DNA of 64,000 nt from Mobula birostris (GCF_030028105.1 NC_092374.1:176786057-176850056), one strand, 5' to 3'. Shown: positions 19,019 to 60,974, numbered from the stretch's first letter. The notes: generated by a model from the letters alone, not told the origin. A program made the numbers and translations.

Positions 19019-19236
19019 CTAATTGTCAGCGCTGAGGAAGCCTTTGTCTCTCCTGGTCACAACAGTACACTGTTGATCATGGTTGATTTCAGCAGGTCCT
19101 TGCTGGTTACTCAGAGGTTTGCTGTAATTCTTCTTCCTCCAGAAGCCAATTCCAATGATGATCCCGAGGAGAATGAGTGGAATGATTGCAACTCCAGCCA
19201 CAGTTACTGTCTTTGTATCTTTCTTTGTTGTCCTCT
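19019..19236 (-). CDS. MHC-I-like exon 5: connecting peptide, transmembrane helix, cytoplasmic tail and stop
   Basis: Acceptor ttctctatgtatccacag, phase 1. Encodes [35 protein letters not shown], stop-transfer RKK and a tail ending at TAG 19021-19019. Confidence 0.88.
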
Positions 19237-22200
19237 CTGTGGATACATAGAGAATATTTCAATTTTTTTGATAACCACTTTGTAACATTTTATTATCTGC
19301 ATTAAACTTGTACTGTTCACATCAAGTTATAATGTAATTTAGACATAGATACAGAAAATATAGAAACATACAAAATCTACAGCAGAATACAGGCCTTTTG
19401 GCCCACTATGCTGTGCCAAACATGTACTTACTTAGAAACTACCTAAGGTTACCCATAGCCCTCTATTTTTCTCAGCTCCAAGTACCTATCCAAGAATGCC
19501 TATGATCTTCTGCAGAGCTATGTTTAAAATAAATCAATGTAAAAACTTTTAAGTTCATATTAACATTGAGACATCATTTACAACTTCGGGTAGGATTGTG
19601 GCATGAGTGAAAGTAATTGCTTCTTGGGGGCCAAGAAAAGATATCTTTTTCTTTGTAAAATTTGCTTTTAACAATCCAAAGACAATTTTACTCCAAGAAT
19701 TTTGAGTACTGCAGGGCTACTCCATCAGTGAACTACTCATTGATCACAATAGCTGCACTGCTGTTGGAAGTGGCGTAAGCTGAGATATTGCAGGGACCGA
19801 CTGGATGTGGGAGAAGGAGCCAGTTGAGATATCAGGAAAGGAGATGATCAAGATGTTAGAGGAGCCAGTTTCGGTATGAAAGAGCTGACCTGGCTGAAGA
19901 CCGTGTTCCTGTCTGCTACTTGGAAGCATCGGAATTAGTTCAATATAACCGTGGGAGATTGTCTTGGTCATTTCATTTGCAATCACAAGACGCTGATCAA
20001 CAGTGATAATTTAAGTTGCCACAGGCCTGTTACCCTTGCCATGATGGAATGGTGGAACAGACCTGATAGGCCAAATGGCCTTTCTCTATAGTCTTATGGT
20101 CTAAACCAGAACATCCCAAATATAGCCATCAGCATTTGCCTCGCTGTTGACCTGGCTCCATGGCTGTAGCCTATTGCCAGTCTCTTTATAGAAACATAGA
20201 AACAGTGAAAAAACCTACAGTACAATACAGGCACTTTGGCCCACAAAGTTGTGCCGAACATGTCCCTGCCTTAGAAATTACGAGGCTTACCTATAACCCT
20301 CTATTTTTCTAAGCTCCATGTACATATCCAAAAGTCTCTTAAAGGACCCCATTGTATCCACCTCCACCACGGTTGCTGGCAGTCCATTCCATGCACTCAC
20401 CACTCTCTGAATAAAAAACTTACCCCTGACATCTCCTCTGTACCTGCTCCCCAGCATCTTAAACTGGTGTCCTCTTGTGGCAACCATTTCAGCCCTGAGA
20501 AAAAGCCTCTGACTATCCACATGATCAGTGCCTCTCATCATCTTATACTCCTCTATCAGGTCACCTCTCATCCTCCGTCGCTCCAAGGAGAAAAGGCCAA
20601 GTTCACTCAACCTACTTTCATAAGACATGCTCCCCAATCCAGGCAACATCCTTGTAAATCTCCTCTGCACCTTTTCTATGGCTTCCAAATTCTTCCCGTA
20701 GTGAGGTGACCAGAACTGAGCACAGTACTCCAAGTGGGGTCTGACCAGGGTCTTATATAGCTGCACCATTACCTCTCAGCTCCTAAATTCAATCCTACGA
20801 TTGATGAAGGCCAATACACTGTACACCTTGTCAACCACAGAGTCAACCTGTGCAGTTACTTTGAGCGTTCTATGGACTCGGACCTCAAGATCCCTCTGAT
20901 CCTCCACACTGCCAAGAGTCTTAACATCAATATTATATTCTGCCATCACATTTGACCTACCAAAATGAACAACGTCACACTTATCTGGGTTGAACTCCAT
21001 CAGCCACTTCTCAGCCTAGTTTTGCATCCTATCAATGTCCTGCTGTAACATCAGACAGTCCTCCACAATATCCACAACACCTTCAAGCTTTGTATCATCA
21101 GCAAACTTACTATCCATTTCCTCCACTTCTTCATCCAGGTCATTTATAAAAATCAAAAAGAGTAAGGGTCCCAGAACAGATCCCTGAGGCACTCCACTGG
21201 TGACCGACCTCCATGCAGAATATGACCCATCTATGACCACTCTTTGCCTTCTATGTGCAAGCCAGTTCTGGATCCACAAAGCAATGTCCTCTTGGATCCC
21301 ATGCCTCCTTACTTTCACAATAAACTTTGCATGGGGTACCTTATCAAATGCCTTGCTGAAATCCATATACACTACATCTACTGCTCTTCCTTCATCAATG
21401 TGTTTAGTCACATCCTCAAAAAATTCAATCAGGTTCGTAAGGCACGACCTGACAAAGCCATGTTGATTATTCCTAATTATATTATACATCTCTAAATGTT
21501 CATAAATCCTGCCTCTCAGGATCTTCTCCATCAACTTACCAACCACTGAGGTAAGATTTACTGGTCTATAATTTCCTGGGCTATCTCTACTCCCTTTCTT
21601 GAATAAAGGAACAACATCCACAACTCTCCAATCCTACGGAACCACTCCCCTCCCCATTAATGGTGCAAAGATCATCGCTGGAGGCTCGGCAATCTCCTCC
21701 CTCACCTCCCACAGTAGTCTGGGGTACATCTCATCCAGTCCCGGCAACTTATCCAACTTGAAGCTTCCGAAAATCTCCAGCACATCCTCTTTCTTAATAT
21801 CTACGTGCTCAAGCTTTTCAGTCTGCTGCAAGTCATCACTACAATCACCAAGATCCTTTTCCACAGTGAATACTAAAGTATTCATCAAGTACCTGTTCTA
21901 TTTCCTTCAGATCCATACTCACGTCCTCACTGTCACACTTGATAGGTCCTATTCTTTCATGTCTTATCCTTTTGCTCTTCACATACTTGTAGAATGCCTT
22001 GCAGTTTTCTTTAATCCTTCCTGCCAAGGCGTTCTCATGGCCCCTTCTGGCTCTCCTAATTTCCTTCTTCAGCTCCTTCCTATTCGCCTTATAATCTTCT
22101 AGATGTCTAAAATTACTTAGCTCTTTGAACCTTTTGTAAGCTTTGCTTTTCTTCTTGACTAGATTTATTACAACATTGTTACACCATGGTTCCTGTACCT

Positions 22201-25200
22201 TACTATAACTTCCCTGTCTCATTGGAACATACCTATGCCGACCTCCACACAAATATCCTCTGAATATTTGCCACACTTCTTCTGTAGTTTTCCCTGAGAA
22301 CATCTGTTTCCAACTTAAGCCTCCAATTTCCTGCCTGATAGTCTCATAATTCTCCTTACTCCAATTAAGCGCTTTTCTAACTTGTCTTTTCCTATCTCTC
22401 TCCAATGCTATTGCAAAGGAGATAGGATTATGATCACTATCTCCAAAATGCTTTCCTACTGAGAGATCTGACACCTGACCAGGTTCATTTTCCAATACTA
22501 AATCAAGTACAGCCTCTCCTCTTGTAAGCTTATCTACATATTGTGTCATGATACCTTCCTGAACAGACCTAACAAACACCACCCCATCTAAACACCTTGA
22601 TCTAGGGAGATGCCAATCGATATTTGGGAAATTAAAGCCTCCCATCACGACAACTCTGTTATTACTACATTTTTCCAGGATCTGTTTCCCTATCTGTTCC
22701 TTGAAATCCCTTTTACTACTGGGCAGCCTATAAAAAAACCCAGTAAAGTTATTGACCCCTTCGTGTTCCTAACCTCCACCCACAGAGACTCCATAGACAA
22801 TCCCTCTACAGTGTCCAACTTTTCTGCAGCCGTGACACTATCTCTGATCAACAGTGCCACACCCCTACTTCTTCTGTCTCCCTCCCTGTCCTTTCTGAAA
22901 CATCTAAAACCCGGCACTTGAAGTAACTGTTCCTGTTCCTGAGCCATCCAAGTCTCTGTAATGGCCACCACATTGTATCTCCAAGAACTGATCCACACTC
23001 TAAGTTCATCCACTTTGTTCACAACACTCCTTGCGTTAAAATAGACGCAGCTCAAACCTTCGGTCTGAGCGTATCCCTGCTCTATCACCTGCCTATCCTC
23101 CCTCTCACACTGTCTACCAGCTTTCTCTATTTGTCAGCCAACCTCCTCTTCCCCAGTCTCTTCAGTTCAGTTCCCAATCCCCAAAAATTCTAGTTTAAAC
23201 TCTCCCCTGTAGCCTTAGCAAACCTCCCCACCAGCATATTGGTCCCCCTGGGATTCAAGTGCGACCTGCCTTTTTTGTACGGGTCACACCTGCCCCAAAA
23301 GAGGTCCCAATGATCCAGCAATCTGATTCTCTGCCCCCTGCTCCAATCCCTCAGCCACACATTTATCCTACACCTCATTCTATTCCTATTCTCACTGTCG
23401 CGTGCCATAGGCAGTAATCCCGAGATTACTACCTTTGTGGTCCTGCTTCTCAACTTTCTTCCTAACTCCCTGTAGTCTTTTTTCAGGACCTCTTCCCTTT
23501 TCCTACCTATGTCATTGGTACCAATATGTACCACAACCTCTGGCTGTTCTCCCTCCCACTGCAGGATATCTTGGACGCAATCTGAAATATCCCAGACCCT
23601 GGCACCTGGGAGGCAAGCTACCATCCTAGTTTTATTCCTGCATCCACAGAATCGCCTGTCTGACCCCCTAACTATAGAGTCCCCTATCACTACTGCCTTC
23701 CTCTTCTTTTGCCTACCCTTCTGAGCCACAAGGGCAGACTCTATGCCAGAGGCACATCCACTGTCGCTTCCCCCAGGTAGGCTGTCCCCGCCGTCAGCAC
23801 TTAAACAGGAGAACTTATTGTCAAAGGGGTACAGCCACAGGGGTACTCTTTAGTACCTGACTCTTCCGCTTCTCCCTCCTGACTGTGACCCACTTGTCTG
23901 TCTCCTGTGGCCCCGGTGTGACCAACTGCCTATAACTCCTTTCTATCACCTCCTCGATCTCCCTGACCGGGTGAGGGTCATCGAGCTGCATCTCCAGTTC
24001 CCCAACTCAGTCTCTTAGGAGCTGCAGCTCGACACACCTGGTTCAGATATGGCTGTCCAGGAGACTGGGAAACTCCAGGACCTCCCGCATCTGGCACCAT
24101 GCATACTTCCTCCTTTCCACAAATAACACAGGTAAACCTACCTCTACTTACCGACCCTTGTCTGGTGGTGGGATAGAAGACATGGAAGTTGTGTGGCCTT
24201 GGTTCTAGTGAGGGCTAGGTTTCAAGCCTTGGGCTTGCCTGCTACTGCAGACCAGGGGAGAACCGTGGCATCTATGCTCGGCTGGGACTTGGCCCCTTCC
24301 ATTGCTGCTGTTCGTCCATGTTTGAGAGGTGGAATGACAGGCTAGATTGCATGCATCTGCATGCTGTCGGGACGCTGTACCATGATTGCCGGACTTTGTC
24401 GCTAAGGTTCTTGAACTATATACATGTTTTTTTGAATGAATGTGCTTCTTCACTGGCTATGTTGAATCATGTTACTTACTCTTTTGAATGCTTGCTTGCT
24501 ATCATGAATGCTTTGTACATTGGCCCCAGAGGAATGCTGTCTCATTCGGCTGTATCTATGTATGGGTTGAATGATGATTAAACTTGATTTGATTTGATTT
24601 GAACAGAAACAGTTTTGCTATCACTGGCATAGATGAGGTGAAGTTATCAGCAGCAACACAGCATATAAACATAAAATTGCTTTAATTTACAAAAAAAAAT
24701 GCACAGTGCAAAAAAGAAGAATAATGGGGTAGTGTTCATGGGTTGATGGACATTTCAGCAATTTGGTAGTGGAGGGGAAGGAGATGTTTTTGAATCACTG
24801 AGTGTTGGTCTTCAAGATTATGTACCTCATCCCCAATGGTAGGAACAAAAATAGAGCATCTCCAGGGTAATTAAAATTTCAGAGAAACAAACAAGTACCA
24901 GAAATATATAGATTAGTGTTCAGTTGTGAAGTCAATAAAGATATTTCCTTCTTATGTTTTTGGACTGCAAAGAAATTTACTAAAACAAATGGAAATAAAG
25001 AAGTTTATAACTATAAGACTTCAAAAGCTTTAAGCTCTGTTGACACATTGCAATTCGGTGGTCTCTCTCTCCCTCTTTCCCTCTCTCTCTCCTTTCTTTC
25101 TTCCCTCATTCTGTATCTGTCTATCTCTTACATAAACACACACATGGATAAAGTTACAATCAGTTTGTACTGATCAGCTATCTTCAGAACATCAGAAGGG

Positions 25201-28200: not shown

Positions 28201-31200
28201 CCACATGGCTTTAGACCACCTGGACAATACTAACACCTACTTCAGTGTGCTGTTCATCCACTATAGTTCAGCATTTAATACTATCATTCCCATAATCCTG
28301 ATTGAGAAGTTGCCTGGGCCTTTGTACCTCCCTCTGCAATTGGATCCTCGACTTCCTAACTGGTAGACCACAATCTGTGTGGATGGTTATTAGCATATCC
28401 TCCTCACTGACAATCAACATCAGCGCACATCAGGGCCGTGTGCTTAGCTCACTGCTCTGCTCTATATACAGATGACTGTATGGCTAGGGATAGCTCGAAT
28501 ACCATCTATAAATTTGCTGATGATACAACCATTGTTGGTAGAATCTCAAGAGGGCATACAGGAGTGAGATATGCCAACTAGTGGAGTGGTGCTGCAGCGA
28601 CAACCTGGCATTCAATGTCAGTAAGACGAAAAAGCTGATTGTGGATTTCAGAAAAGGTAAGACGAAGGAACACATACTAATCGACATAGAGGGATCGGAA
28701 GTGGAGAGAGTGAGCAGTTTCAAGTACCTGGGTGTCAAAATCTCAGAGGATCTAACCTGGTCTCAACAAATTGATTAAGTTATAAAGAAGGCATGATGCG
28801 GCTATACTTTATTAGAAGCTTGAAGAGATTTGACATGTCAACAAATACACTCAAAAACTTCTATAGATGTACCGTGGAGAGCTTTCTGACAGACTGCATC
28901 ACTGTCTGGTATGGAGGATGGGGGACGGGGGATGGGGGATGCTACTGCACAGGAGTGAAAGAAGCTGCAGACGGTTGTAAATCTAATCAGCTCCATCTTG
29001 GGTACTAGCCTACAAAGCATCCAGGACATCTTCAGGGAGCAGTGTCTCAGAAAAGCAGCGTCCAATATTAAGGACCTCCAGCACCCAGGGCATGCCCTTT
29101 TCTCACTGTTACCATCAGGTAGGAGGTACAGAGCCTGAAGACACACACTCAGTGATTCAGGAACTGCATCTTCCCCTCTGCCATCCAATTCCTAAGCGGA
29201 CATTGAATCCTTGGACACTACCTCACTGTTTTTAGCATACAGTATTTCTGTTATTTGCAAGTTTTTTTTAATCTACTGTAATTGATTTACTTGTTTATTT
29301 ATTATTATAATTACTTTTTTTTCTCTTCTGGATAATGTATTGTATTGAACTGCTGCTGCTAAGTTAACAAATTTTGTGTTGCACGCTGATGATATTAAAC
29401 CTGATTCTGATTCTGATTCTGTGAGGCAGTAACTAGTCTAGAAGTGCTAATATATTAGGTCAGGAAGCACTGCATCAAGAAAGCAGCATATGTCATCCAA
29501 TATCCCTGCCATCCGGTTCATGCCTTATTCTTCCTAATAGCATCAGGCAGGAGTTACAGAGCCTGTTGCTCCACACCATAAGGTTGAGGAACAGCTGCTT
29601 TCCTTCAGTCATCAGGTTTTTGAATTGAACTGTGCAACCTTAAGCTACATCAACAACAGAACACTGACCACCTCTCCCATTAGCATAGACTTGCTTCTGA
29701 TTGTGTTTTTCCTGATTGTCTTGCACAGTCTTTGTTTTTTTCTCTTCACTGTATTGTACAATTTGTAAATTAATCATATTCTGAATGTTGGCTGAATCTA
29801 TGTGCCCGGCATGCTGCTGCAAGCAGGTTTTTTATTGCACCTGTATGTCACTGTACTTCTGTATGTGAAAATAAACTTGACTTGATGTGTATTAACATTC
29901 TGTTATTTGTCTGGCATTTCGTATTCCACAGAATATCATTATTCCTGACCAATTAGAAATTAAGCAGTACATATGAAAACATGTGTTTTAAGGCTCTTAA
30001 TGTATTCTGCATTGTTGCTTGCCCCAAGTGATCAGCCTGAAGCAACAACAAGGATCTCTGACTTGCCACTTACCCTGTGGTATATTGAGTCCCTGCAGGA
30101 GGGTGGCATGCTCGATGTAACAGGAGTATTTTGCCCCCTCAGCTTCATTCAGTGTAATCATTTTCATCACCTGATAAGTCCCATCATGGTTGGGTAATAC
30201 ATCACTGGATCCAATCTCGGGGACCCACTCACCATCTCTCAGCCATGAAACATCGATAGCCTGTGGGTAGAACCCTGTGACAAGGCAGGAGAGTCTCAGC
30301 GGTTGAAATCCATCACTCCTAATACTGATAAACACTTCAGGGATTGCTACAAATGTAAAGAGTATCAACATCAGTGAAAATATGAAAAAACAGTTTTAGT
30401 TGTGACATCAATTCTACTCCCCTCTCTTCCAACTAGAGTTTATCTCAGTGTACCCAAAGCACCTTTTCACCAGTGTCACTATTTACTGAGGGTTTGCCTA
30501 TCCCTGGTGTTGTGGAAGATAGGCCTGGCAGCATTATCCATAACATTTCGGTCTGCTGGACATTGGTACTCTACTTGTCCTTTGTTAAGAACACTTCCAG
30601 GTAAACACCTTTGACCACAGTTACATCAGGTAGTGGTCAGCATGAGACTTCCTTCAGGTACTATGACATAGGGACACTGGATAAGATAATGTTGTTCCCT
30701 GACCGTCCAGATCTTCTGGTGGAATGTCTCATTACCAAATCTCACCACTGAGCAATAAGACAGTGCTTGGCTGGCAGTGAGAAGGACAATCTCAGTCAGA
30801 TACTCTCTGTACAGATGTCATATCATCCCCAATACCTGCTGCTCTCAGGATACCTGTGGTGGGAAGTATCTGGTCACCCACCTTTGTCCAGATTTGCTAG
30901 GAGGGAATAGGGAAGAATGCAAAAGTCTCTGTTCTGGTTCATTCCCAGCAGTTGCATAACAGAGGGCTGTCTGATCTACAGAGCGTTTCCAGGGTCACAT
31001 ATCAAGAAAGACTCTGCTGAATGACAGCACTAATTATTTTAAGAGATAAGTCAAGAAAAATATCTTTAATTAGAATACTGTTAGAATTACTCGCAATTTA
31101 AGCAGCATTCCAGCCAAATGATTTTGCTGCATTTAAATGAGGCAATGTAAGACAATTACAAACTTAACTGGATGCCTTAGCAAGGTAAGAGTCCTTCGAT

Positions 31201-34200
31201 GGGTGCAATCTGTTTTGCTTTTAGATTTGCTTTGTTCCTACATTTAGATTAGATTATAAGGACACTCAGTCCTCATTTATTGTCATTTAGAAATGCATGC
31301 ATGCATTAAGAAATGATACAATGTTCCTCCAGAGTGATATCACAAAAAAAAAACAGGACAAACCAGGGAACAACACTGACAAGACCACATAATTATAACA
31401 CATAGTTACAGCAGCAGTTAACCATTTAGACAGTTAAGTAGGGAGTTGAATTAGTAAATTACTTTAAAGTCATTTGAAGTCTTTTCAACTTATTGGGTTG
31501 TTTCATTTCACCTGCAAAAAGAGGACCTCCCCAGTGGAATTCAAGACTAAGCTGCCTACTCCTCTTTGAGCCAAATTACTTCATCTGTTTTATGTATTAA
31601 TTCATTTAGTATGGCTGTCGGTCTATGAGCTAATACGACCACGCATCCTGAACTAATATTAACATACACAATTGGATTGGGGACTGGTGCAGAATTCATT
31701 CCTCATAAGCATTTCTAACCCGTCTGCCTTATCTAATGGGTACATTGTCAGCTCTCTCATTGATTTCCTGTCAATGAACAATTGTTTAAGGGACAGCTCT
31801 TGATCTCACAATTTACCTCATTGTATTTCACTATATTTTATTCAGAGTTTGAAGAGATTTGATTTGGCACCTAAAACACTCAAAAACGTCTATAGATGTG
31901 CCGTGGACAGCATTCTGACAGTCTGCTTCACTGTCTGTTATGGGAGTGCTTCTGCTGAGGATCAAATAGAGCTACAGGAATCTGTAAACTTCTTGAGCTC
32001 CATCTTGGGTACCAGCCTCCATAGTATCCAAGTCATCTTCAAGAAGCAGTGCCTCAGAAAGGTGACACCCACTATTAAGGACCTAATCACCCAGGGACTG
32101 CCCTCTTCTCATTGTTATTATCAGGAAGGAGGTACAGAAGACTGGCGGCACACATTCAATGTTTCAGCAACAGCTTTTTTTCCCCTCTGTGATATGATTC
32201 CTAATTGTACATTGAACCTATGAACACCAACTCACTTTTTAAAAATATGCATTATTTCTGCTTTTGCACTATTTTTAATCTATTCAATATACATATATAT
32301 GCTCACTGTAATTGATTTACTTGTTTATTTATTTACTCATTCTTTATTTATTATCATTTGTTGCATTGTACTGCTGCTGCTAAGTTATCAAATTTTATGA
32401 CACATGCTAGTGACAATAAATCTGACTCTGATTCTGATTATGGCCCATACACTTCATTTGTTTATTTGCTCTGCTCTCTCTCTGTAACTGTAACTGCAAC
32501 AATATATTATGCATTTCATTCTTTAAGGTTGTCACAGTTGGAGCGGTAGTGGTGATAAGCTCTTACTAACTATTAGATGCTCCCATTGGCATGCATCTCA
32601 AATAGTCTCTGACAAACAAATTCTTCTCCTGGCCTTTATGTGGGATAAAGCTAAAATTCCAGCAGAACTGTTTCTACCGTCAGGAGAAAGGTGGGTTGCT
32701 GGCATCTTAAAACTAGTCACTTTGGCAGATGTCAGCCTTGGTTGACAGCTCACCTAGGAGAAGTAAAACTCTGATCTCCAACCTCTGCTGCCTTGTGGCT
32801 AGATTCACTCTTGGGGAAGGTTTTGGGAGTAATTCGTGAGGAAATATCCAGAGCTGGTCCCTAAGGCAGTGTGATGTTGAGTTCTAAACTGACTGGCAAC
32901 TCCTGCAATGCTGTTGGTTCCAAGCTGTATCAGTCTCTGCCATTCCTTGAAATTTAAGAGACTGCTAGACAGGTAAATGGAGGAATTTAAGATGGGGGTA
33001 ATATGGGAGGCAGGGTTTGAGGGTCGGCACAACATTGTGAGCCGAAGGGCCTGTACTGTGCTGTACTATTTTATGTTCTATGTTTACAGTTTTGTGTATC
33101 ACCTAGTCACTTAGAATGCAATATCCATGGTCAAATCCCCAACCAACAGAGGACCTGTATTTTGTATTTGATTAGTTCTTTTCTCTTTATACTATCTCAA
33201 TATACTAATGTTTGAGATGATCTGCATGGATGGCAAGCAAAATATTTTTTGTCCAGAGTATGTGACAATAATACTCCAGTTAACAATTACCTGAGGTTTG
33301 CCACATTTCTCACCTGGGCTATCTGGAGTATTTCCCCTGTACCCAACATTCAGAGTACCCAGGTATTATACCTCTCTGCCGTAGCGCTTCTTGCCCACAC
33401 TCAAGATATATCAGCAGCCACTTCACACAGTCCTTCTCCAAGAGAGCTTTGAAGTATTTGTTCATGAGCATGTTGACGTTCCACCGATCTGCAAGCACTT
33501 GGAACTGTGGATTTAGCACAATCCAACTCATTGCTTCCTTGTCAAAAACACATGCATCTTCGCCATCGTAGCCCAGTCTTATGAACCCATCTGTGGAGTT
33601 ATCATTCTTCAATTCACAGCCGCAAACCCCCTGGACAAAGAAATCAGCTGGGACTGAGGGAAGGGTAGGGGGGAAGAGGCAAGTGAAAAATAAACTGATG
33701 TGGCATGTAGGCATATAAGAAAGTAGAAGCATGAGTATCTCTTCTATTTTGTGCACGTCTACCCTAAACCCATCATCCTGCAGCCCCAGAAGCAATAGGG
33801 TTTCTCTTGGCTTCACCTACCACCCCACCTGCCTCCACGTCCAGCACATAATTCTCCATAACTTCCACCATCTCCAACAGGATCCCACATCCAAGAACAT
33901 CTTTCCCTACACCTATCCCCCTCGACTTTCTGCTTTCCACAGGAATCACTCCATATGCAACTCCCTTGTCCATTCGTCCCTCCCCACCGATCTCCCGCCT
34001 GGTACTTATCCTTTCAAGTGGAATAAGTGCTACACTTGCCTCTAGACTTCCTCCCTCACTACCGTTCAGGGCCCTAAACAGTTTTTTTCCAGGAGCAACG
34101 ACACTTCAGCTGTGAGTTTGTCGTGCCCATCTCCTGTGTCCAGCACTCCCAATGTGGCCTCCCACCCGATGTAGATTGGAAGATTGCTTCGCCGAGCACC

Positions 34201-37200
34201 TACGTTCCATCCACCAGGAAAATCAGGATCTCCCCGTGGCCTCCCATTTTAATTCCACTTTCTATTTCCATTCTGACATTTCAATCCATGGCCTCCTCTG
34301 CTGCTGTGTTCAGGACATACTCAGGTTGGAGGAGCAAAACCATATATTCCGTCTGGGCAGCCTCCAACCTGATGGCATGAACATCGATTTCTCTAACTTT
34401 CGGTAATGACCAACCCCCTTACCCCCTTCACCATTTCCCTTCCTCTTTTCCTCACTGACCATACCTTCTCGCCTGCCCGTTGCCTCACTCTGGTGCACCT
34501 CACCCTTTTCTTTCCTGCATGGCCTTCTATCCTCTCCTATTTGGTTCCCCCTTCTCCAGCCCTGCATCTCTTTCACCAAACAACTTCTCAGCTCTTTGCT
34601 TCACTCCACCCCCTCCCAGTTTCACCTATCACCTTATGTTTCTCACTCCCCTCCCCCCAACCTTTCAACTCTAATTCCACATCTTTTTTTCCTCTAGTCC
34701 TGCTGAATGTTCTCAGCCCAAAGCATCAACTGTATTCTTTTCCATAGATATGGCCTAGCCCACTGAGCATTTTTTGTGTGTTGTTTGGATATCCAACATC
34801 TGTAGATTTTCTCTTGTTTGAGGATGAGTAGGAACTACTTGAGCCAGAAAACATGGCTAATCCGCCCCAGATCTCAGTTCTTCTTTTTTACCTCCGCAAG
34901 CACTCAACTCCTCACTATTTCAGCATTTTATTCTACATTTAAAAATGTCGAATGGTCCAAGCTTCACACTCATAAGTGTAGAGAGTTCCAGAGAATTCAT
35001 TGCACTTCAAGAAGAAATACCATAGAGCCTCATTATTAAATTACTGCTCTCTAACCTTGTAATATTCTCTCCTCATTTAAAATTCTCCCAAGAGTGGAAA
35101 CTGTTCAACATATAATTACCTACAGATGTAGCACATAAATCATCACATCCATTGGTAACACAGCTTGTTATTGTAACTGCTCTACCCACCAATGCAAGAA
35201 GTTGCAGAGTACTTTATGAAAATCCGCCTGCCTTCCATGCACACCTTCTTGAGAAATCAGTCAACATATCAAAGTCACCTCCCATCCTAGTCATTCTCTA
35301 TTCTCCCCGCTTCTTTAGGCAGAAGATAACTACTACCAGGCTCAAGGGCAACATCTATCTTTCTCTTAATAGACTCTTGAATGGGCCATAAAGATAACTC
35401 TTGACCTCACCATTTACTTCAAAATAGTCCTTACATCTTATGGTTTGGCTGCACGACACTTACATGTAACTATAGCATAACATTCTGAATTCTGTTATTG
35501 TATTTCACTTTGTTCTAATGCAATCTATTTATGTTCTGAAATAATCTATATGGAAAGCATGCAAAATGAGTGTTTCAATGTAACTCAGTACATGTGAAAA
35601 TATTAAGCCAATTACACCTTCCCGTATACCCTTGAATTCTTTTTGTTTCAAAAAGTTCACTCCTCATTCTTCTGAATTCCAGTGAGTACCCATCTGGTAT
35701 TGTTAGCCGTTTATGATTTGACAGCCTTCTAATCCCAGGGATTAGTAAATGCTTCCCTTCTGCATCACCTCCAATGCCATCACATCCAGAAACAAACACA
35801 AATGCGCCTTAAATACAGTGACATTTTTCAAACAAGATCTTGTATTAGTGGCTCAATAGAACATATTAGGAAGGCACAGCATTGCAACTAGTAGAGGTAG
35901 AACCTTACCTGCCTCTAATTCTGAATGTTTGGAGTTTGTTCCCTCTGCGACCTTGTGAGTACTCCAGTTTCCTCCCATATCTCAATGATAATTTGCGTTC
36001 ATAGGATAATTGGCTAATGTATACTTGCCCAAATGTTTGGGTAAGTAACAAAAAAGCTGGGAGAGTTGATTAGAGTATGGAAAGAATAAAAATGGGATTA
36101 GAGCAGGACTATTGTCATCCTGCCAAAGGGTCTCAGGCAAAGACGTGGACTGTACTTTCATCTGGCAAATCTCAGTTTAGCATAACCTGTCCTGCAATTA
36201 TTGTTGCTAAAGTGAAGGGATGTTGATTCTACTCTTTTCCATAGATGCTACCTGCCCTGTTGAGTTCCTCCAGCATTTTGTGTGTGTGTGTTACTTGGTT
36301 TGCAGCACCTGTAGATTCTCTTTTGTTTGCTATTGCTGTTGATAGTCAGCAGGGGACAGTGGGCTGAAGGGGCAGCTTCCATGCTGTATGACCTGATGGC
36401 TCCAGGTTTACATATGGTAGACATGGAATACCCCCAAATATTAAGTGCCATACTTGGAGAATATTGAGAAAGCAACACTGAAGAAATTCCAGCAACACAC
36501 ACAAGATGCTGGAGGAACTCAGCCGGCTAGGCAGCATCTATGGAAGAAAGTACAGTTGATGTTTCAGGCTGAAACCCTTCAGCAGGACCATATTTTTTTT
36601 TCCATAGATGCTTCCTGGCCTGCTGAGTTCCTCCAGCATTTTGTGTGTGTTGCTCAGATTTCTAGCATCTGCAAAGTTTCTCTTGTTTCTGAAGAAATTC
36701 TGCTATGTCACAGCTACAATATCAGATGGGCAAAACTGTTGGAGAGGCAATATTGAAGGCCGAAGACAGAGCAGCAGATTAGGACTGTGGGAATGAGGCA
36801 ACATAGATGGAAAGTGCAGGCACTTTGGGGAATTGGACTGAGAGAGATCATTGCAATATCACAGGATCACTGTCAGTACTGAGGGTTGGCTACATTAATA
36901 GAACATTATAACTGAGGGAATACTATCAGTGATACAAATGTTCAGATAGAGTCAGGATCCTATCTTTGCACTATTGGGACACAAATAAACCAACGATTTC
37001 TCTTTCACTGCAGTCCAGCTAATGTATAAGATCCAACGTAGTGTAGGATTAGGGTGTAGGTCTTGCCAGTGCCTGTAACGGGTTTGTACACTTTCCCCAT
37101 GACCACTTTAGATTCCTTCCACTTTCCAAAAGGATACCGATTAGGATTAGTGAGCTGTGGGCATGTTGTGTTGACACTGAAAGTGTGCTGACATTTGCAG

Positions 37201-40200
37201 GCTGCCCCAGCACAATTCCCACAGATTTGATGCAAAATAACATATTTCACTGTGTGTTCCACTGCACATGTGACAAATAAAACTGATCATTTAATCTTAA
37301 TCCATTCACTCATTGCAGCTGTTGTGACAAAGGCTAGACCTTATAAGAGACCATCACCTGCTAACTGGGTGTGCAGTGATAAGGACACATTAAACTAAAA
37401 AGATAAGGCTTTGACTTCATGCAAGTCCATCTGTACAGTCATTGGGTTTTGTTAGGTCACTTACCACTGTGCTGTTGGTAAACAATCTCAACATTCCCTC
37501 TGATTATCCCATGAAAACCTGCCACTGTGATTGCTATTGCATCCCAGTGTTCACTCGGGAAAGAGTAAGCCATCCACCATTGTCTGGGAACAGCCCTATG
37601 CAGCGTACTGTCAAAGTACACTATCTGCTGGTCATCCAGCGTTGCCACCATGCTATATTCAGTCAGCTCACTCCTTCTGTGGTTCAACAAGTAGTAAAAT
37701 GCAAGGCTGTGAAAATCTGCAATATAGAAACACAAATTAGTGATGCAAAGTGATGTGAAATTAGTTATGTGTCACTCTGGGTTTTCAGCATCTACAGAAT
37801 ATCTTGTGTTGGTGATGTAAAGACCACAATGCAGAAAGGCATTAATTAATATTAAAACTGATTACAACTTAGGAACATTGGATCCAGGGTATGTCAGGTG
37901 GTTCTTAGGCCGTGTCCACCAATCATGATTCCACTTCTAAATGATCTGCATTAACATACTATACATTTGCCTTTTTGCAATGTCTCCATCTTGAAAAATC
38001 TGTCCATCTTAGTCATTCATGTGTTCATCTATTAAACATTTCTCTGGTTAATGTTTTACGAATTTTACTTTACCCACCACCCTTTCCAAGCCATTAATAC
38101 TCATTTCAATCCCCTCCCCTTCCCAGTTGCATCCATCCATTCATTTACCTCACCAACTCTCTCTTTCCCCAGCTGCTCCTGGTTTCATATGTCCTTCACC
38201 TCCCTCATAATGGTTCCACAATCATCTTCCTGACTTATCAGATCTCAGCACTTCTATCCATTTTTCTTTATAATTATCAACCTCCATGGTCTTTACCTTA
38301 GCCTCACCTCACCTCCCCCTTCCTGGCTTCATCTTTCTTTTCTCTATTGCCTTTCATCCATCATGTAAACAACTCTTGTCTTCTGACTCCATACTCACCC
38401 TCCCCTACGCTGAACCTTCTGCCCATTATCTTTTATCTCCAAACTCGCCCTTTGCCCAATACACCATAATGTCTTGCTTCACTAATCTCTGTATCGATCC
38501 TTCCTCTTCATTTTATGAGTTATCTCCCTCCTTTCATCACCAATTCCTTTCCCATGACAGATGCTTGTCAAACTGCTCAGTTCTTCCAGCAGACAGTTAC
38601 TCCAGATTCTGGTACCTACTGTCTCTTGTGTCTCATCAGAATATTAAGATGATATTTGGATATACAGTACTGTGCAAAAGTCTTCAGAAAATATATATAC
38701 ATATATGGCTAATTGGTTGGCATTTATCTGTCTGGAAGGACAATGGGTGATGATGATCATCATCACAAGCATGTGCGGAAGGTATGGAGATCCTAAGATG
38801 CCCAGTCATTAAGGTCACCCTCTCAGCCTCACCAGCATAGTCCAAAGGAAAGTTTATGAAGCAACACTTAGCTTGCACAGGAGAGTTTGGAGATAATCTA
38901 TCAGAGTTACAGGGAAGTAATCAGTCCTAAGTTGCAGAGGTGAGTAGCAGGGTGACTGTCAGAAGAAATAGAAATGTGAATAGGCATTTAGCGCAGAGCA
39001 TCCCTATGGCCGTTCTTTTCAATAATAAGTAAACCACTTTGGATACTGCTGTGGGGGATGACCTCCCAGGAGAATGCCATGGAGACTGGTTTACTGGCAC
39101 TGAGCATACGTCCATTATGCAGAACTGAAAGAGGGAGAAGAGGGTAGTGGTAATGATAGGGGGTTCAACAGTCAGGGGAACAGACAGGAGATTCCATGGA
39201 GATGAACAGTACACTAAAATGGTATGTTGCCTCCCTGGTGCCAGGATCATGGACATCTTGTGTCATGTCCACAGCATTCTGGAGAGGGAGGGAGAGTAGC
39301 CAGATGTTTTGGTACATATTGGTACCAGTGACAGAGGAAGGAAAAGAAAAGAGGTCCTGAAAATATAATTTAGAGAGCTAGGTAGAAAGTGGATAAACAG
39401 GACCAACAGCATAGTAATTTCTGGATTACAGCTTGTGCCACACACCAGTGAGGGGAGAAACTGGATGATTTGGTAGATTATTGTGTGGCTGAGAAGCTGA
39501 TGCAGAGGGAAGGGCTTCAGGTTCTTGGATCTTTAAGATCTCTTCTGGAGGAGATATGACCTGTTCAGAAGTGAAGGGTTGCACTAGAACCGAAGGAGGA
39601 CTACTATTCTCACCAGCAGGTTTATTAGAGCTGTTGGAGGGGTTTTAAACAAAATTGTTAGGGAGGTGGGAACCAGAGTGAAGGACTCAGGATAGGATAG
39701 ATGGTAAAAAAGCAAAGTTTGCATGCAATCAGTCTGTCAGGAAGGGCAGACAAATGATAAGATGAAATTGCAGCCGGCAGGGAGAGTATCAGTGCATTAG
39801 GGATGTAGAATCGAAAAGCGTAGCAAATACAGAATTCAAAGTGTTATATCTCAATGCACAGAGTATAAGAAAAAAGGTAGATATCTTGTTGCACTATTAC
39901 AGATAGTCAGGTATGATGTTGTGGCCATCACTGACTCGTGGCTAAAGGGTGGTTGCAGTTGGGAGCTGAATCTCAAAGGTTACACATTGTATCAGATGGA
40001 TAGGAAGGTAGGCAGAGGGGGTGGCATGGCTTTGCTAGTAAAGAATGGCATCAAATCAGTGAAAAGCTGTGAAATAGGATCAGAAGATGTTGAATCCTTG
40101 TGGGTTGAGTGAAGAAATTGCAAGGGTAAAAGGACTTGATGGCAGTTCAGTACAGGCCTCCAAACAGTAGCTGAGATGTGGACCACAGATTACAATGGGA

Positions 40201-43200
40201 AAGAGAAAAGGCATATCAAAAGGGCAATGTTATCATAGTCATGGGAAATTTCAGCATGCAAGTCAATTGGGAAATCCAGGCTGGTAATGGATCTCAAGAG
40301 AGTGAGACTGTTGAATATCGATGAGATGGCATTTTAGAGCAGTTCGTCAATGAGCTGAGTAGGATTAGGTATTACGTAATGAACTGGAGGTGATTAGGGA
40401 GATTAAGGTAAAAGAGCCCTGAGGAAGCAATGATCACAATATGATTGAATTCAACTTGATTTGATAGGGAGAAAATAAGGTCTGATGTTGCTGTATGTCA
40501 GTGGATCATACAGTTGTATGAGAGAGAAGTTGGCCAAAGTAATTTGGAAGGAAATGCTGTCAGGGATGACAGCAGGGCAATAATGGCGTGATTTTTTGTG
40601 AAAAATACAAAGGTGCAGGATACATGTATACTAAAACCAAAGAAATAGTTAAATGGTAAAATAAAGCAAAAGATTGGGCATACAACAATTCAAAAAATAG
40701 TGGTAAGACAGATGGTTGGGAAGCTTTTAAAAACCTACAGAGAGCAACGAAAAGAATCATTAGAATGGAAAAGATGAAATATGAAAGCAAGCTCGCAAAC
40801 AGTATCACAGTGGATAGTAAAGATTTTTCGAGTATGTAAGAATAAAAAAAGATGAATGTGGATATAGGACCACTAGAAAATAAGGCCACAAAAATAATAA
40901 TGCGGACAAGGAGATGGCAGAAGATCTAAATGAGTATTTTGCATTAATCTTCACTATGGAAGACACTATTAGTGTGCCAGATGTTGAAGAGTACCAGGGA
41001 AGAGAAGTGAGCAGTTTCTATTACAAGGAAGAAGGTGCTCCAAAAGCTGGAAGACCAAAAGGTACATAATTCACCCAGGCCAGATGAGTTGCACACTAGA
41101 CTTGTGAAAGAGGTAGCAGTACAGATTATGGAGGCATTAGTAATGATCTTTCAAAATTCATTGGAATCCAGCATGGTGCCAGAGGACGGAAAAATTGCAA
41201 ATGTCACTCCACTTCTTAAGAAAGGAGGAAGGAAGCAAAGAGGAAATTATAGACCAGTTAGCCTGACCTCAGTGGTTGGGAAGATATCAGAGTCAATTGT
41301 TAATTATGAGGTTATGGAGTATTTTGTGACACAGGTCAAGATAGGACAAAGTCAGCATAGTTTCCTTAAGGAAAGATTTTGCCTGACAAACCTTTGGAAA
41401 GTTTTTGAGGCAATAGAAAGTAGCATAGATAAAGGGGATGTAGTGGATGTTGTATACTTGGACTTTCAGAAGGCATTTGACAAGGTGCCGCACATGAGGC
41501 TGCTTACCAAGTTAAGTACCCATGGTATTAAAGGTAAATTACTGGTATGGCTGTCTGGTAGGATGCTGTGATTCGGAAGAAAATGATCCTTTTCTGGTTG
41601 ACTGCAAGTGCTTCTTTTTATGCTGTATATCAATGACTTAGATGATGGAACATATGGCTTTGTTGCCAAGACTGCAGATAATACAAAGATTGGTGGAGGG
41701 GCAGGTAGTGTTGAGGAAAGAGATAGGCTGCAGAAGGACTTAGACAGATTAGGAGAATGGGCAAGAAAGTGGAAAATGAAATACAATCTTGGAAAATGCA
41801 TGTTCATGCACTTTAGTAGAAGAAATAAATGTGCAGACTATTTCTAAATGGGAAGAATATCAAAAAATCAGAGATACAAAGGGACTTGGGAGTCCTTGTG
41901 CAGAATATCTTAAAGGTTAACTGACAGGTAGAGTTGGAAGTGAAGAAGGCGAATGTAATTTTAGCATTCATTTTAAAAGGTCAAGAATACAAGAGCAGGG
42001 ATGTGATGCTGAGACTATATAAGGCACCAGCTGAGGCTTTACTTTGACTTTTGTGAACAGTTCTGGACTCCTGATCTAAGAAAATATGTGTTGGCGTTGG
42101 ACAGGGTTCAGAAGTGTTTCACAAGGATGTTTCTGGGAATGAAGAGGTTATTATATGAGAAATGTTTGATAGCTCTGGGTCTGTACACACTGGAATTTAA
42201 AGGGATGAAGGGGGAATCTCATTAAAACCTTTTGAATGTTGAAAGTCCTAGACTGAGAAGATGTGGAAAAGATGTTTCCCATGGTGGGGACTCTAGGACA
42301 AGAGGGCATATCCTCAGAATAGTGGGGCATCCATTTAAAACGGAGACATGGAGAAATTTCTGTAGCCAGAGGATGGTGACTTTGACGAATTTATTTCAAC
42401 AGGCAGTTGTGGAAGTCAGGTCATTGGATGTATTTAAGGCAGAGCTTTCTAGGCTTTTGATTGCACAAGGCATCAAAGGAGAAGGCCAGTAGTGGGGCTG
42501 AGGAGGGAAAATAAAAGGATCAGCCATGATTAAATGGCCAAATGGCCTAATTCTACTCCTATGTCTTACAGTCTTATGGCTTTATTATGGTCAATACGTT
42601 TGACACCAGCTTGGCTGCAGGAGCTGCCAGAAGAATGTTCAATGACGTCCATCCACCTTAAGAGCTCCACTCTGGATTTGTTGTCTGAGTTTACTCCCGT
42701 AGCCTTCGCTGCCCACAAGGCAGTGGGGCTCTTTACCCTTAGCTGGAGATGTGTTTCACGAGCACCAAGGTGTGTCCAGACACCACTGGGCCTGCGTGCA
42801 ACGTGTACAGGGGCTGGACCTGCTCTCCGTCCTCTGTGGTTCAGCCTGAGTCTGAACGAAGTTCATTTCCCGTGTGTCGCCAGTGAGGAGGCACAACATG
42901 AGGCTATGTACAGGCAGGGAGTGACTTACACATTCCACTCTCTTTTTCGCAAGACTGCTAACCAGTGGTGGAAACTGAAAGTGAGAGTGACAAAGAATAC
43001 CCACAACACTACCACACTAGATGCATCACAACAACCATAGATAGATAGCTAGGATGCTTAAGATTTATGTACAGTATTTGTCAACGTGGAGCAGAAAACG
43101 GGTTTGTAAATATGGTGGGAAGAAAAGGTGTTGGGAATGGCAAGGGTGGAGCACTATGGAATGCGTGTGACAGCGGGCACAGAAGGAATGCCGGAGGTTG

Positions 43201-46200: not shown

Positions 46201-46992
46201 AGAAAGGAGTGACCATAGCGATGAGCGGGTGAAATAGGCTATTGCCTCAGATCCTGACACCCTGTCTTTTCAGTTTTTCTGAGCCGACATTTAAATTGAC
46301 CCAATAATGGAAGAGCAAAAGGCTCCAACGTAGAGCGGAGTGGAGAATAGAGTGAACATTGCAAGAATGAATGAAATTGGCTCTCGCTCCACTCAGCACC
46401 CAGAACAATCCAAAATGGCACCTGGGCCGCTGTACGAGCATCAGAATTCCACTGTCCCAGCGTCTCCTGTCCAAATGGCTGGCTCACTGCATCTACATTG
46501 ATTCTGCAACGTACTTTCTCAGCTCATCCCCAGATCTTGCCTTGTCATCACCTGCCTGCTGACTGTTTGCAGCAATAATTTAACACTATTTACCTCAGAA
46601 ACGACGTTCTTAGATGTTTTTAGTCAAATTTATTGCCTTTTCAACTACCAGTGAGCTGTCACACATGTTCGATAGAGCCACCTTAACTGGAAATGGTATT
46701 CTGTTGTACTTGTGTTGCAACTTACATTGTATTCTTTTCTGTTCCTCAGCGTAATACAAAAATATCTGTAATACAACTTCTCACAAGGTCTTTACAGCAG
46801 CACAGGGATCGCTGTTTCTCTCAATCATTCATACACTTAAGACAGTGACCCAGTAAAAACTAAGGGACTGCTCAACAATATATTAAATTTGCAACTGCAA
46901 TAAATCTTTGTGGTTCCTTTAAAGAAGTTAAGTTACTTACCGGAAGAGACTGTGGCTACACAGTAAATGTTCAGTAAAGTAAAAAGCAGCAT
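19019..46992 (-). CDS. Nonclassical MHC class I heavy-chain-like gene, 5 coding exons, 1071 nt CDS, 356 aa. Domains: leader [17 protein letters not shown]; alpha1 DFHSLAFYY...VYQQHS; alpha2 [11 protein letters not shown]...EALRQR; alpha3 AIPEV...NIPQ; CP/TM/CYT ERTTKK...LSADN
   Basis: Exon lengths 52+252+276+273+218=1071 nt join in one open frame through four phase-1 GT-AG introns. Class I motifs are present: HSL.F, LDD.Q..YFDS, PRQ.W, E.W, Q...GC, GYDG.D, W133, RW, DC..WL..YL, C1-set [25 protein letters not shown] and YSC.IEH. I cannot assign a lineage (UBA/UCA/UDA/UEA or other) without a tree, so no symbol is given. Confidence 0.93.
20188..24097 (-). mobile_element. Near-full-length CR1 LINE in MHC intron 4, same strand as the gene; ORF1 SGNH/GDSL-esterase-like and ORF2 EN-RT; frameshifted
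   Basis: ORF1 23190..23729 ([18 protein letters not shown]); EN 22690..23088 and 21845..22648; RT 21016..21621 ([25 protein letters not shown]); C-terminus 20287..20769; (catagaaa)n tail. Confidence 0.95.
26670..27030 (+). mobile_element. CR1 LINE 3' end
   Basis: gaaaggtcttgatagagtgg...ggaatttctttagcccaagggtgtgaatc...atgggccaaatggactaactctg. Confidence 0.78.
28060..29420 (+). mobile_element. Rex1/Babar-like LINE, RT plus 3' end, disrupted
   Basis: MKWFERQVM...LDPLQF; [13 protein letters not shown]; KFADDT; [19 protein letters not shown]; tail ending (tctgat)n. Confidence 0.78.
30074..30346 (-). CDS. MHC-I-like exon 4, alpha3 Ig C1-set domain (91 codons)
   Basis: Acceptor ctctttacatttgtag; donor G|GTAAGT; C1-set motifs [22 protein letters not shown] and YSCYIEH; lies inside ORF 29997..30371. 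Confidence 0.96.
31830..32440 (+). mobile_element. Rex1/Babar-like LINE 3' end in MHC intron 3
   Basis: ORF 31849..32223 [21 protein letters not shown]; same tail as the 28060-29420 copy. Confidence 0.72.
33372..33647 (-). CDS. MHC-I-like exon 3, alpha2 domain (92 codons; alternative in-frame acceptor at 33653)
   Basis: 276 nt, the typical alpha2 exon size; C101-C164 equivalent pair; acceptor cccag after a long pyrimidine tract; donor AG|GTATAA; lies inside ORF 33319..33816. Confidence 0.94.
33740..34810 (+). mobile_element. Penelope-like element 3' part (RT thumb/linker, GIY-YIG C-terminus, pLTR), ~90 bp from the alpha2 acceptor
   Basis: TYHPT...[13 protein letters not shown]; PPGTYP...KCYTC; [21 protein letters not shown]...[23 protein letters not shown]; then a pyrimidine-rich pLTR. 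Confidence 0.82.
36491..36654. repeat. Penelope-pLTR-derived hairpin (55-bp arms, 51/55 complementary, 54-nt spacer)
   Basis: 36491-36545 agcaacacacacaagatgctggaggaactcagc...ctatggaa is the reverse complement of 36600-36654, with 4 mismatches. Confidence 0.9.
37465..37716 (-). CDS. MHC-I-like exon 2, alpha1 domain (84 codons)
   Basis: Acceptor ctaatttgtgtttctatattgcag with a CTAAT branch-point-like motif; donor G|GTAAGT; lies inside ORF 37457..37735. Confidence 0.95.
38930..42580 (+). mobile_element. Degenerate near-full-length CR1 LINE (second subfamily) in MHC intron 1, antisense to the gene
   Basis: Esterase-like ORF1 remnants at ~39130-39620; EN 39921..40112; RT 41035..41571 ([24 protein letters not shown]); 41608..41847; 3' end ~42560. 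Confidence 0.88.
42590..42960 (-). mobile_element. Interspersed repeat resembling an RTE-clade 5' region; related copy at ~32700-32940 (+)
   Basis: Shared core aaggc(t)(t/a)(c/t)gggagtaa...aaatccagag...ctggca(g/a)ctcctgca. Clade assignment is tentative. Confidence 0.4.
43483..43553. mobile_element. Tiny Tc1/mariner-like MITE (28-bp TIRs, 23/28 match, 15-bp core); a solo TIR of the same family at ~38663-38685
   Basis: tacactactgtgcaaaagtcttaggcac ... gtgcataagacattttcacagtactgtg. Confidence 0.7.
44385..44930 (-). mobile_element. CR1 LINE 3' end
   Basis: ORF 44732..44923 [29 protein letters not shown]; CR1 3' UTR. Confidence 0.8.
46941..46992 (-). CDS. MHC-I-like exon 1, signal peptide [17 protein letters not shown]
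   Basis: ATG at 46992-46990; 17 hydrophobic codons plus one G, then the consensus donor GTAAGT (46940-46935). Phase 1 matches exon 2 (G+AT = Asp). Confidence 0.88.
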
Positions 46993-47064: not shown

Positions 47065-47192
47065 TTTTAACAGAACTCTGGCGTGGAGCTACTTATTGGT
47101 CCGGGTGTATAGCAAACCTGATAACCGCATCCAATGGGAATGAAAGGGATGGTTCTGGTCACTAATTACCAGTCAATGGAGTCTGAGGATCC
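47065..47192 (-). promoter_or_regulatory. Putative class I core promoter with an SXY-like module
   Basis: On the minus strand: GGATCCT (47192-47186, S-like, weak), CTGGTAAT (47172-47165, X1-like), TGACC (47161-47157, X2-like), a 21 nt spacer, ATTGG (47135-47131, Y box), CCAAT (47099-47095) and TTAAAA (47070-47065, TATA-like). The TATA-like element ends ~70 nt upstream of the ATG. Confidence 0.65.
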
Positions 47193-60787: not shown

Positions 60788-60974
60788 GTCATGATCAATG
60801 AAGAATCATTTGATTCTGGCATGGCCCCAGAGGACTGGAAATTTGCAAATGTCAGTCCACTGATTAAGAAGGAAGGAAGTGAAAAGAAAGGAAATTATAG
60901 GCCAGTTAACCTAACCTCAGCGGTTGGCAAAGTGTTGTAGTTTATTATTTAGAATGAGGCTTTGGAGTACATAC

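Follow-up and report, generated by a model that had tools for sequence, protein, structure and literature searches.

The closest described relatives of the gene reported here are UFA and UGA, two nonclassical major histocompatibility complex (MHC) class I lineages of cartilaginous fish. UFA lies in the class Ib cluster, and its antigen-binding region has been described, as unpublished data, as very similar to that of CD1 (Verissimo et al. 2023, PMC10751288); a 2025 review reports, as a personal communication, that UFA and UGA both resemble CD1, occur in single or low copy number, and bind lipids according to crystallography and mass spectrometry (PMC12562908). Structures of both are in the PDB, under the entry titles "shark nonclassical MHC class I, UGA" (9ch4) and "shark nonclassical MHC class I, UFA" (8gm8). 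An unsettled question about how adaptive immunity evolved is whether the presentation of lipids goes back as far as that of peptides. UFA and UGA have begun to answer it for sharks; CD1 itself has been reported in mammals, birds and reptiles only. Here we describe a class I gene on the minus strand of a 64,000-nucleotide stretch of the manta ray (Mobula birostris) genome (GCF_030028105.1, NC_092374.1:176786057-176850056), called the window below. The gene and its orthologues belong with the nonclassical, hydrophobic-groove class Ib genes of cartilaginous fish and are distinct from the named and structurally solved UFA and UGA. They represent at least one more lineage of that kind, for which we use the working name lineage X.

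Five exons, extracted from the minus strand of the window, join into an open reading frame (ORF) of 358 residues in which every splice site is GT-AG. The gene is complete and encodes an MHC class I heavy chain anchored in the membrane, with a signal peptide, alpha1, alpha2 and alpha3 domains, a transmembrane segment and a short tail. Its parts, in the order of transcription, are as follows:

47065..47192, minus strand: candidate promoter directly upstream of the leader exon, with ATTGG/CCAAT boxes and a TATA-like TTAAAAT (motifs found by eye)
46941..46992, minus strand: exon 1, from the start codon through a 17-residue signal peptide to the first base of codon 18; gtaagt donor, phase 1
37465..37716, minus strand: exon 2, alpha1, 84 codons, 252 nt, phase 1, AG/GT borders
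33372..33653, minus strand: exon 3, alpha2, 94 codons, 282 nt, phase 1, acceptor ccctcag, AG/GT borders
30074..30346, minus strand: exon 4, alpha3 immunoglobulin (Ig) C1-set domain, 91 codons, 273 nt, phase 1, AG/GT borders
19019..19236, minus strand: exon 5, connecting peptide, 21-residue transmembrane segment (from a hydrophobicity scan), 40-residue cytoplasmic tail and stop codon TAG

A preliminary description of this locus had placed an intact nonclassical class I molecule at 30074-37716. These limits are exact, being the last base of the alpha3 exon and the first base of the alpha1 exon on the minus strand, and the gene is intact well beyond them, with the leader and transmembrane/tail exons completing the 358-residue ORF. 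Exon 5 continues the alpha3 frame in phase 1, is identical in the RefSeq protein described below, and has a homologous counterpart in every orthologue. The signal peptide of exon 1 is very similar to the leaders annotated for the orthologues of Pristiophorus (P0063) and Heptranchias (P0065). A tblastn search with the 358-residue protein found no class I exons in the window beyond these five, so there is no other gene to which the leader and tail exons could belong. Intron lengths are 9.2, 3.8, 3.0 and 10.8 kb, and debris of long interspersed nuclear elements (LINEs) occurs throughout. For alpha2, a downstream acceptor (tttgtccag) was considered and rejected, as its use would remove the first beta-strand; the upstream acceptor (ccctcag) is preceded by a long pyrimidine tract and is the one used in the RefSeq protein and in all orthologues.

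The gene is already present in RefSeq, under the misleading automatic name "MR1-like". The corresponding protein (P0062, Mobula birostris) was recovered by searching the alpha1 exon against 1.8 billion representative proteins, followed by a named search with the best match. It is 100% identical to residues 40–358 of our gene model and maps to CM057560.1:176,805,075-176,823,707 on the minus strand. The RefSeq model starts at an internal methionine of alpha1 and is therefore without the leader exon and the first 22 mature residues; its other exon borders are the same as ours.

The named protein search returned 86 matches, among which each of 12 elasmobranchs was represented by one full-length relative: Mobula, Hypanus, Pristis, Leucoraja, Pristiophorus, Heptranchias, Scyliorhinus torazame, Mustelus, Cetorhinus, Stegostoma, Hemiscyllium and Chiloscyllium. 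These relatives are 54–89% identical to the window protein. Two additional partial models, from Leucoraja and Pristiophorus, are possible second copies or mis-assemblies. In maximum-likelihood (ML) trees, lineage X formed one clade (support 100/100), distinct from a large shark-only clade and from a UAA-like clade, and its internal branching largely followed the species tree, with rays separated from sharks and the orectolobiforms together. Lineage X is a single- or low-copy nonclassical lineage of the elasmobranch MHC class Ib region. The sawfish (Pristis) orthologue, LOC127585976, is part of the class Ib cluster, with B2M/BRD2 on one side and RXRB on the other; two more class Ib genes follow it within 150 kb, and it is marked plainly as "MHC-Ib" in the 2023 MHC map (PMC10751288). 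Lineage X and UGA genes share a chromosome or contig in Mobula, Pristis and Heptranchias, in the last case a single 530-kb contig. We found no published name or description of lineage X in the literature. Mean pairwise identity within the lineage is 73% for alpha1, 75% for alpha2, 64% for alpha3 and 48% for the transmembrane segment and tail. The ligand platform is thus more conserved than the Ig domain, a pattern that by analogy is that of monomorphic presenters such as MR1 and CD1d and not of classical class I.

The protein has the organization of a class I heavy chain: an alpha1/alpha2 platform and a C1-set alpha3, one domain per phase-1 exon, with both conserved disulfides (C101–C164, mature 97/160, and C203–C259, mature 199/254). 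Pfam identified MHC_I in alpha2 (4e-16) and C1-set in alpha3 (3e-17), and an MHC_I match in alpha1 (1.6e-4) fell under the cut-off. We made an AlphaFold model of the sawfish orthologue (P0061:72-343), which is 75% identical to the window protein. It had a predicted local distance difference test score (pLDDT) of 90.3 and the usual strands and helices, and matched many class I chains with structural Z-scores above 25. The classical N86 glycosylation site is absent; there is instead a sequon at mature N103 in an alpha2 loop, reading NST in 11 of the 12 orthologues and NTT in Mustelus. The groove floor carries an invariant, unpaired cysteine, Cys99 (mature 95), in addition to the C101–C164 pair. 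Cys99 is also present in the nurse shark classical chain 6lup, and the rays, but not the sharks, have two more cysteines at HLA positions 124 and 174 (mature 119 and 170).

Groove residues were numbered after HLA-A2. For alpha1, an ungapped colinear alignment with 6lup was used, in which the HLA number equals the mature number plus 2 from about residue 54; for alpha2, which aligned without gaps to MR1, the offset is 4 around C101 and around C164, and 5 from Y118 to W147. Pocket composition was calculated over 36 positions, following the A–F pocket list of HLA-A2 given in the literature.

Classical class I, represented by chondrichthyan UAA, is characterized by the anchors Y7, Y59, R/Y84, Y123, T143, K146, W147, Y159 and Y171. 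At these positions the manta protein reads F7, H59, Q84, A123, L143, R146, W147, L159 and Y171, just as listed in the preliminary description. Only W147 and Y171 of the peptide-terminus anchors are kept, plus the conservative K146R, and the term nonclassical is therefore appropriate. The apolar residues attributed to the groove (I63, V67, F70, I73, I74, I80, V81, I114, L116, M152 and F156) and the small residues attributed to its floor (G97 and C99, with A123) are likewise all present in our residue table. The groove had been called almost all apolar, which is supported by the count of A, V, I, L, M, F, W and C residues and by the mean Kyte–Doolittle value over the 36 positions:

Window protein: mean Kyte–Doolittle 1.68; apolar 26/36; charged 2 (R146, D163)
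Lineage X: mean Kyte–Doolittle 1.56 (range 1.35–1.70); apolar about 25/36; charged 2.0
UGA: mean Kyte–Doolittle 0.90; apolar about 21/36; charged 4.2
Large shark-only clade: mean Kyte–Doolittle 0.31; apolar about 20/36; charged 4.3
UAA-like clade: mean Kyte–Doolittle 0.37; apolar about 19/36; charged 6.7

Lineage X is the most apolar at these positions among the chondrichthyan class I sequences compared; the means for the other chondrichthyan and teleost class I sequences compared were 0.3–0.7. F7, H59, Q84, G97, C99, A123, L143, R146, F156, L159 and Y171 are invariant among the 12 orthologues, and positions 63 (M/I), 67 (M/V), 73 (L/I), 74 (V/I) and 81 (F/V/I) vary only between apolar residues. 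A set of polar residues near the groove rim, H59, T66, N77, Q84, R146 and D163, is also invariant. Altogether, 19 of the 36 pocket positions and 77 of the 178 alpha1/alpha2 positions are identical in all 12 orthologues, and because these span sharks and rays, the pattern of groove residues is not a matter of chance.

UGA is the nearest relative of lineage X. In a careful ML tree, X and UGA each formed a clade with support of 100/100 and were sisters at 97/94, with stems of about 0.5 substitutions per site each; when UFA was added, the topology was ((X,UGA)88,UFA)85, with UFA as a separate clade at 100%. X and its sister UGA arose before the shark–ray split; since then, the alpha1/alpha2 platform of X has changed less than its alpha3 domain. 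The UGA structure 9ch4 was the best structural match of the sawfish model (Z 28.4, 37–38% identity), the best PDB match of the alpha1 exon (E 7e-18) and the best sequence match of the full-length X orthologue. UGA proteins (P0004, P0002, P0147-P0159) have the same domain plan as X and are found in both sharks and rays. Many groove residues are common to the two lineages, namely L5, Y9, T66, G69, F70, G72, I/L73, I/V74, G76, G97, L/I114, L116, A123, M152, Y155, F156, L159, L160 and D163. We considered whether X might simply be UGA and rejected this: the two form separate clades, and 9ch4 matches the UGA member P0004 at E 1e-138 versus 4e-66 for the X member P0068. Mobula birostris also has its own UGA protein (P0157), encoded on the same 210-Mb chromosome as the X gene. 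Compared with UGA, the X platform is more conserved (77 versus 38 invariant positions of 178) and its groove more apolar (1.56 versus 0.90).

Identity of X with UFA was rejected on the grounds of the separate 100% clade, the 32% identity between the sawfish model and 8gm8 (Z 21.8), and the presence of distinct UFA-type genes in the manta. The 8gm8 structure, which is the nurse shark member P0168 of the UFA lineage (P0037, P0161-P0183), also ranked lower than 9ch4 among the PDB matches of the alpha1 exon. UFA resembles X in being an elasmobranch, MHC-linked class Ib lineage that groups with X and UGA, at a moderate support of 85, and in the LDD..I.Y.DS and PRQQWMA motifs of its alpha1 domain. 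In alpha2, UFA has diverged much further, and it was absent from the best 60 of 550 PDB matches (E up to 1) of the X alpha2 exon. The manta has a single X gene but five UFA-type products (P0174, P0175, P0178, P0180 and P0181). Two of the manta UFA-type genes are at 178.48 and 178.74 Mb of CM057560.1 (L003 and L002), 1.7–1.9 Mb from the X gene; UFA is thus multicopy in this species, although the literature describes it as single- or low-copy. Before P0037 proved to be the UFA representative, P0118 and P0079 had been considered as members of the 8gm8 lineage and rejected because they match the shark UAA structure 6lup, and the teleost protein P0141 had been rejected because it gave no match.

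The preliminary description had left open whether the gene belonged to a known lineage or to an undescribed one. In our trees it belongs to a separate lineage, sister to UGA and without a published name that we could find. UCA, UDA and UEA were compared with X by their reported features, which make identity with X unlikely. UCA is said to have been defined from a Squalus acanthias sequence, and no Squalus acanthias sequences were among the 86 matches of the X query. UDA reportedly keeps eight of the nine anchors, which X does not, and UEA is reported as a multicopy family confined to sharks, neither of which holds for X.

Evidence for transcription was sought in four runs aligned to positions 29500-34000 of the window. 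The RNA-labelled run X1 contained a 168-nt contig with a depth of 2.8, of which letters 64–168 correspond to 33372-33476 with 0 differences, ending exactly at the alpha2 donor. The depth in the bin holding the alpha3 acceptor was 1.17, exactly 2.8 x 63/151, which places the remaining 63 letters of the contig on the first 63 bases of alpha3. We infer that the contig represents a correctly spliced alpha2–alpha3 transcript, the joint being deduced from the depth and not read directly. Runs X2–X4 were rejected as RNA support, because they are genomic DNA of related species with contigs that cross the introns at about 8% divergence.

With a probability that we put at roughly 60%, the X heavy chain would pair with beta2-microglobulin and present a non-peptide, amphipathic ligand, most likely a lipid, assuming that the groove is open. 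This proposal, which is drawn from sequence, follows from the loss of the peptide-end clamps (Y7F, Y59H, R/Y84Q, T143L, Y159L and Y123A), the small floor residues (G97, C99 and A123), the apolar walls of an exceptionally apolar pocket set, and the reported behavior of the UGA and UFA relatives. The groove would hold the hydrophobic (acyl) part of the ligand, and the head group might be held by the invariant polar residues at the rim (H59, T66, N77, Q84, R146 and D163). The complex would presumably reach the cell surface and be shown there to T cells or to other receptors of lymphocytes, in the manner of CD1.

CD1 serves here as a working analogy, being a nonpolymorphic chain of the class I type whose groove is apolar and has small residues on its floor, and the sawfish model matched both chicken CD1-1 (Z 25.2) and human CD1d (Z 23.1). 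There is no detectable specific sequence relationship between X and CD1, and the sole CD1 in our trees was on a very long branch far from X. The CD1 profile PF16497 scored 25.6 bits, under its cut-off of 35 and under MHC_I. The alpha1 domain had been noted earlier to look class I-like rather than CD1-like, in agreement with its ungapped alignment to shark UAA and with Pfam, where MHC_I scores above the CD1-type MHC_I_3.

Several observations weigh against lipid presentation by X. The lipid binding of UFA and UGA is on record only as unpublished data or personal communication. Moreover, X and UGA are only 37–42% identical and differ in the groove itself: UGA retains Y7 and Y59 as well as the N86 sequon, is polar or charged at 63, 67 and 80, and carries W81, F99, F143 and L167, whereas X has F7, H59, M/I63, M/V67, I80, F/V81, C99, L143 and W167, with no N86. 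The function of UGA is not simply transferable to X. The conserved glycines of the alpha1 helix (G69, G72 and G76) could equally well let the helices close up, and the structural Z-scores do not separate open- from closed-groove relatives of class I. Invariant residues were not significantly more frequent in the pockets than in the remainder of the platform (19/36 versus 58/142, p = 0.26). The tails of the 12 orthologues have no conserved YXX-hydrophobic or dileucine sorting motif, unlike CD1b, CD1c and CD1d, which have a tyrosine-based endosomal sorting motif. Finally, expression is supported by a single low-depth contig, and none of the runs listed contained the last exon or 3' untranslated region.

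The lipid-modified ligands of chicken YF1*7.1 suggest one way in which an apolar groove might be used differently, and X could present hydrophobic or lipid-modified peptides, such as N-acylated peptides or amino acids, rather than free lipids. YF1*7.1 is, like X, of the class I type and has a groove that is narrow and apolar, and its complexes with N-myristoylated and N-palmitoylated ligands were among the best structural matches after UGA (Z 26.5–26.7). X also keeps W147, Y171, R146 and Y9, besides its class I-like alpha1. These Z-scores do not distinguish between class I subtypes, however, as chicken BF2, MR1 and HFE score nearly equally, and the residues that would receive a peptide C-terminus (T143, R/Y84 and Y123) are all replaced in X. 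YF1*7.1 is a bird-specific offshoot of classical class I, with 29–30% identity to X in the structural alignment. We consider ligands of this kind unlikely for X. Small metabolites, as the RefSeq name "MR1-like" would imply, are a very unlikely cargo. Among PDB sequences, MR1 matched the X alpha2 exon best (E 2.6e-17, without gaps), and in both molecules the alpha1/alpha2 platform is highly conserved between distant species. MR1 holds its ligand by a Schiff base to K43 and an aromatic cradle of Y7, Y62, W69 and W156; in X, K43 aligns with an alanine, and most of the cradle is missing (F7, A/M62, G69 and F156). X groups with shark UGA and UFA in trees, albeit ones that include no MR1 sequence, and the label, which derives from similarity alone, is misleading for the lineage X genes. 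By published accounts, MR1 is a mammalian gene, and none is listed for cartilaginous fish (PMC12562908).

A closed or empty groove would make X a ligand for natural killer (NK)-type or other receptors, or give it a non-presenting role like those of HFE, FcRn, ZAG or MIC. HFE, ZAG and FcRn matched the sawfish model nearly as well as open-groove molecules did (Z 24–25), the three glycines of the alpha1 helix are conserved, and conservation extends over the whole platform and not the pockets alone. It would be odd, however, for twenty-five or so apolar side chains to be kept invariant merely to line a collapsed groove, and residues as small as G97, C99 and A123 make a cavity larger instead of filling it. 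Bound lipids are, in addition, reported for UGA, the sister lineage, and for the related UFA, and a closed groove in X appears distinctly improbable. That X might be an unexpressed or decaying copy without function is suggested by the thin RNA support and by a RefSeq model without its first exon, but this is hard to reconcile with an intact ORF, canonical splice sites, the spliced RNA contig that we infer, and strong conservation through all of elasmobranch evolution, and we give it hardly any weight.

Presentation of a lipid thus remains our preferred reading. A more ambitious version of it, in which X is an undescribed third CD1-like class Ib lineage of sharks and rays, older than the shark–ray split, essentially single-copy, more conserved and more apolar than UFA or UGA, and a monomorphic restrictor of invariant natural killer T (NKT)-like T cells in cartilaginous fish, is tentative and on balance doubtful. 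With one gene in nearly every shark or ray genome examined, located in the class Ib region beside UGA-type genes, and as the most apolar and most conserved of the three lineages, X is a well-defined target for asking whether cartilaginous fish have invariant lipid-reactive T cells.

Other sequences in the trees fell outside the lineage. Three Callorhinchus milii proteins (P0092, P0101 and P0107) formed their own long-branched clade, weakly placed outside X and UGA (80/87), and did likewise when UFA was added; this clade may be the holocephalan counterpart of the X/UGA/UFA group. The many "F10 alpha chain-like" proteins recovered with the X query (P0075-P0136) formed one clade of 52 rows in the tree, with sharks only and no rays. 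This clade would fit the UEA family, which is reported to be multicopy and restricted to sharks.

Elsewhere in the window, positions 2523-2717 are a run of 195 N, either an assembly gap or a masked stretch. LINE-type retroelement ORFs (reverse-transcriptase and endonuclease-like) occur in the introns and flanks of the gene:

20287-23729, minus strand: LINE-type ORF
41035-41571, plus strand: LINE-type ORF
53263-55080, minus strand: LINE-type ORF of 605 residues, which looks nearly intact
60040-60822, minus strand: LINE-type ORF

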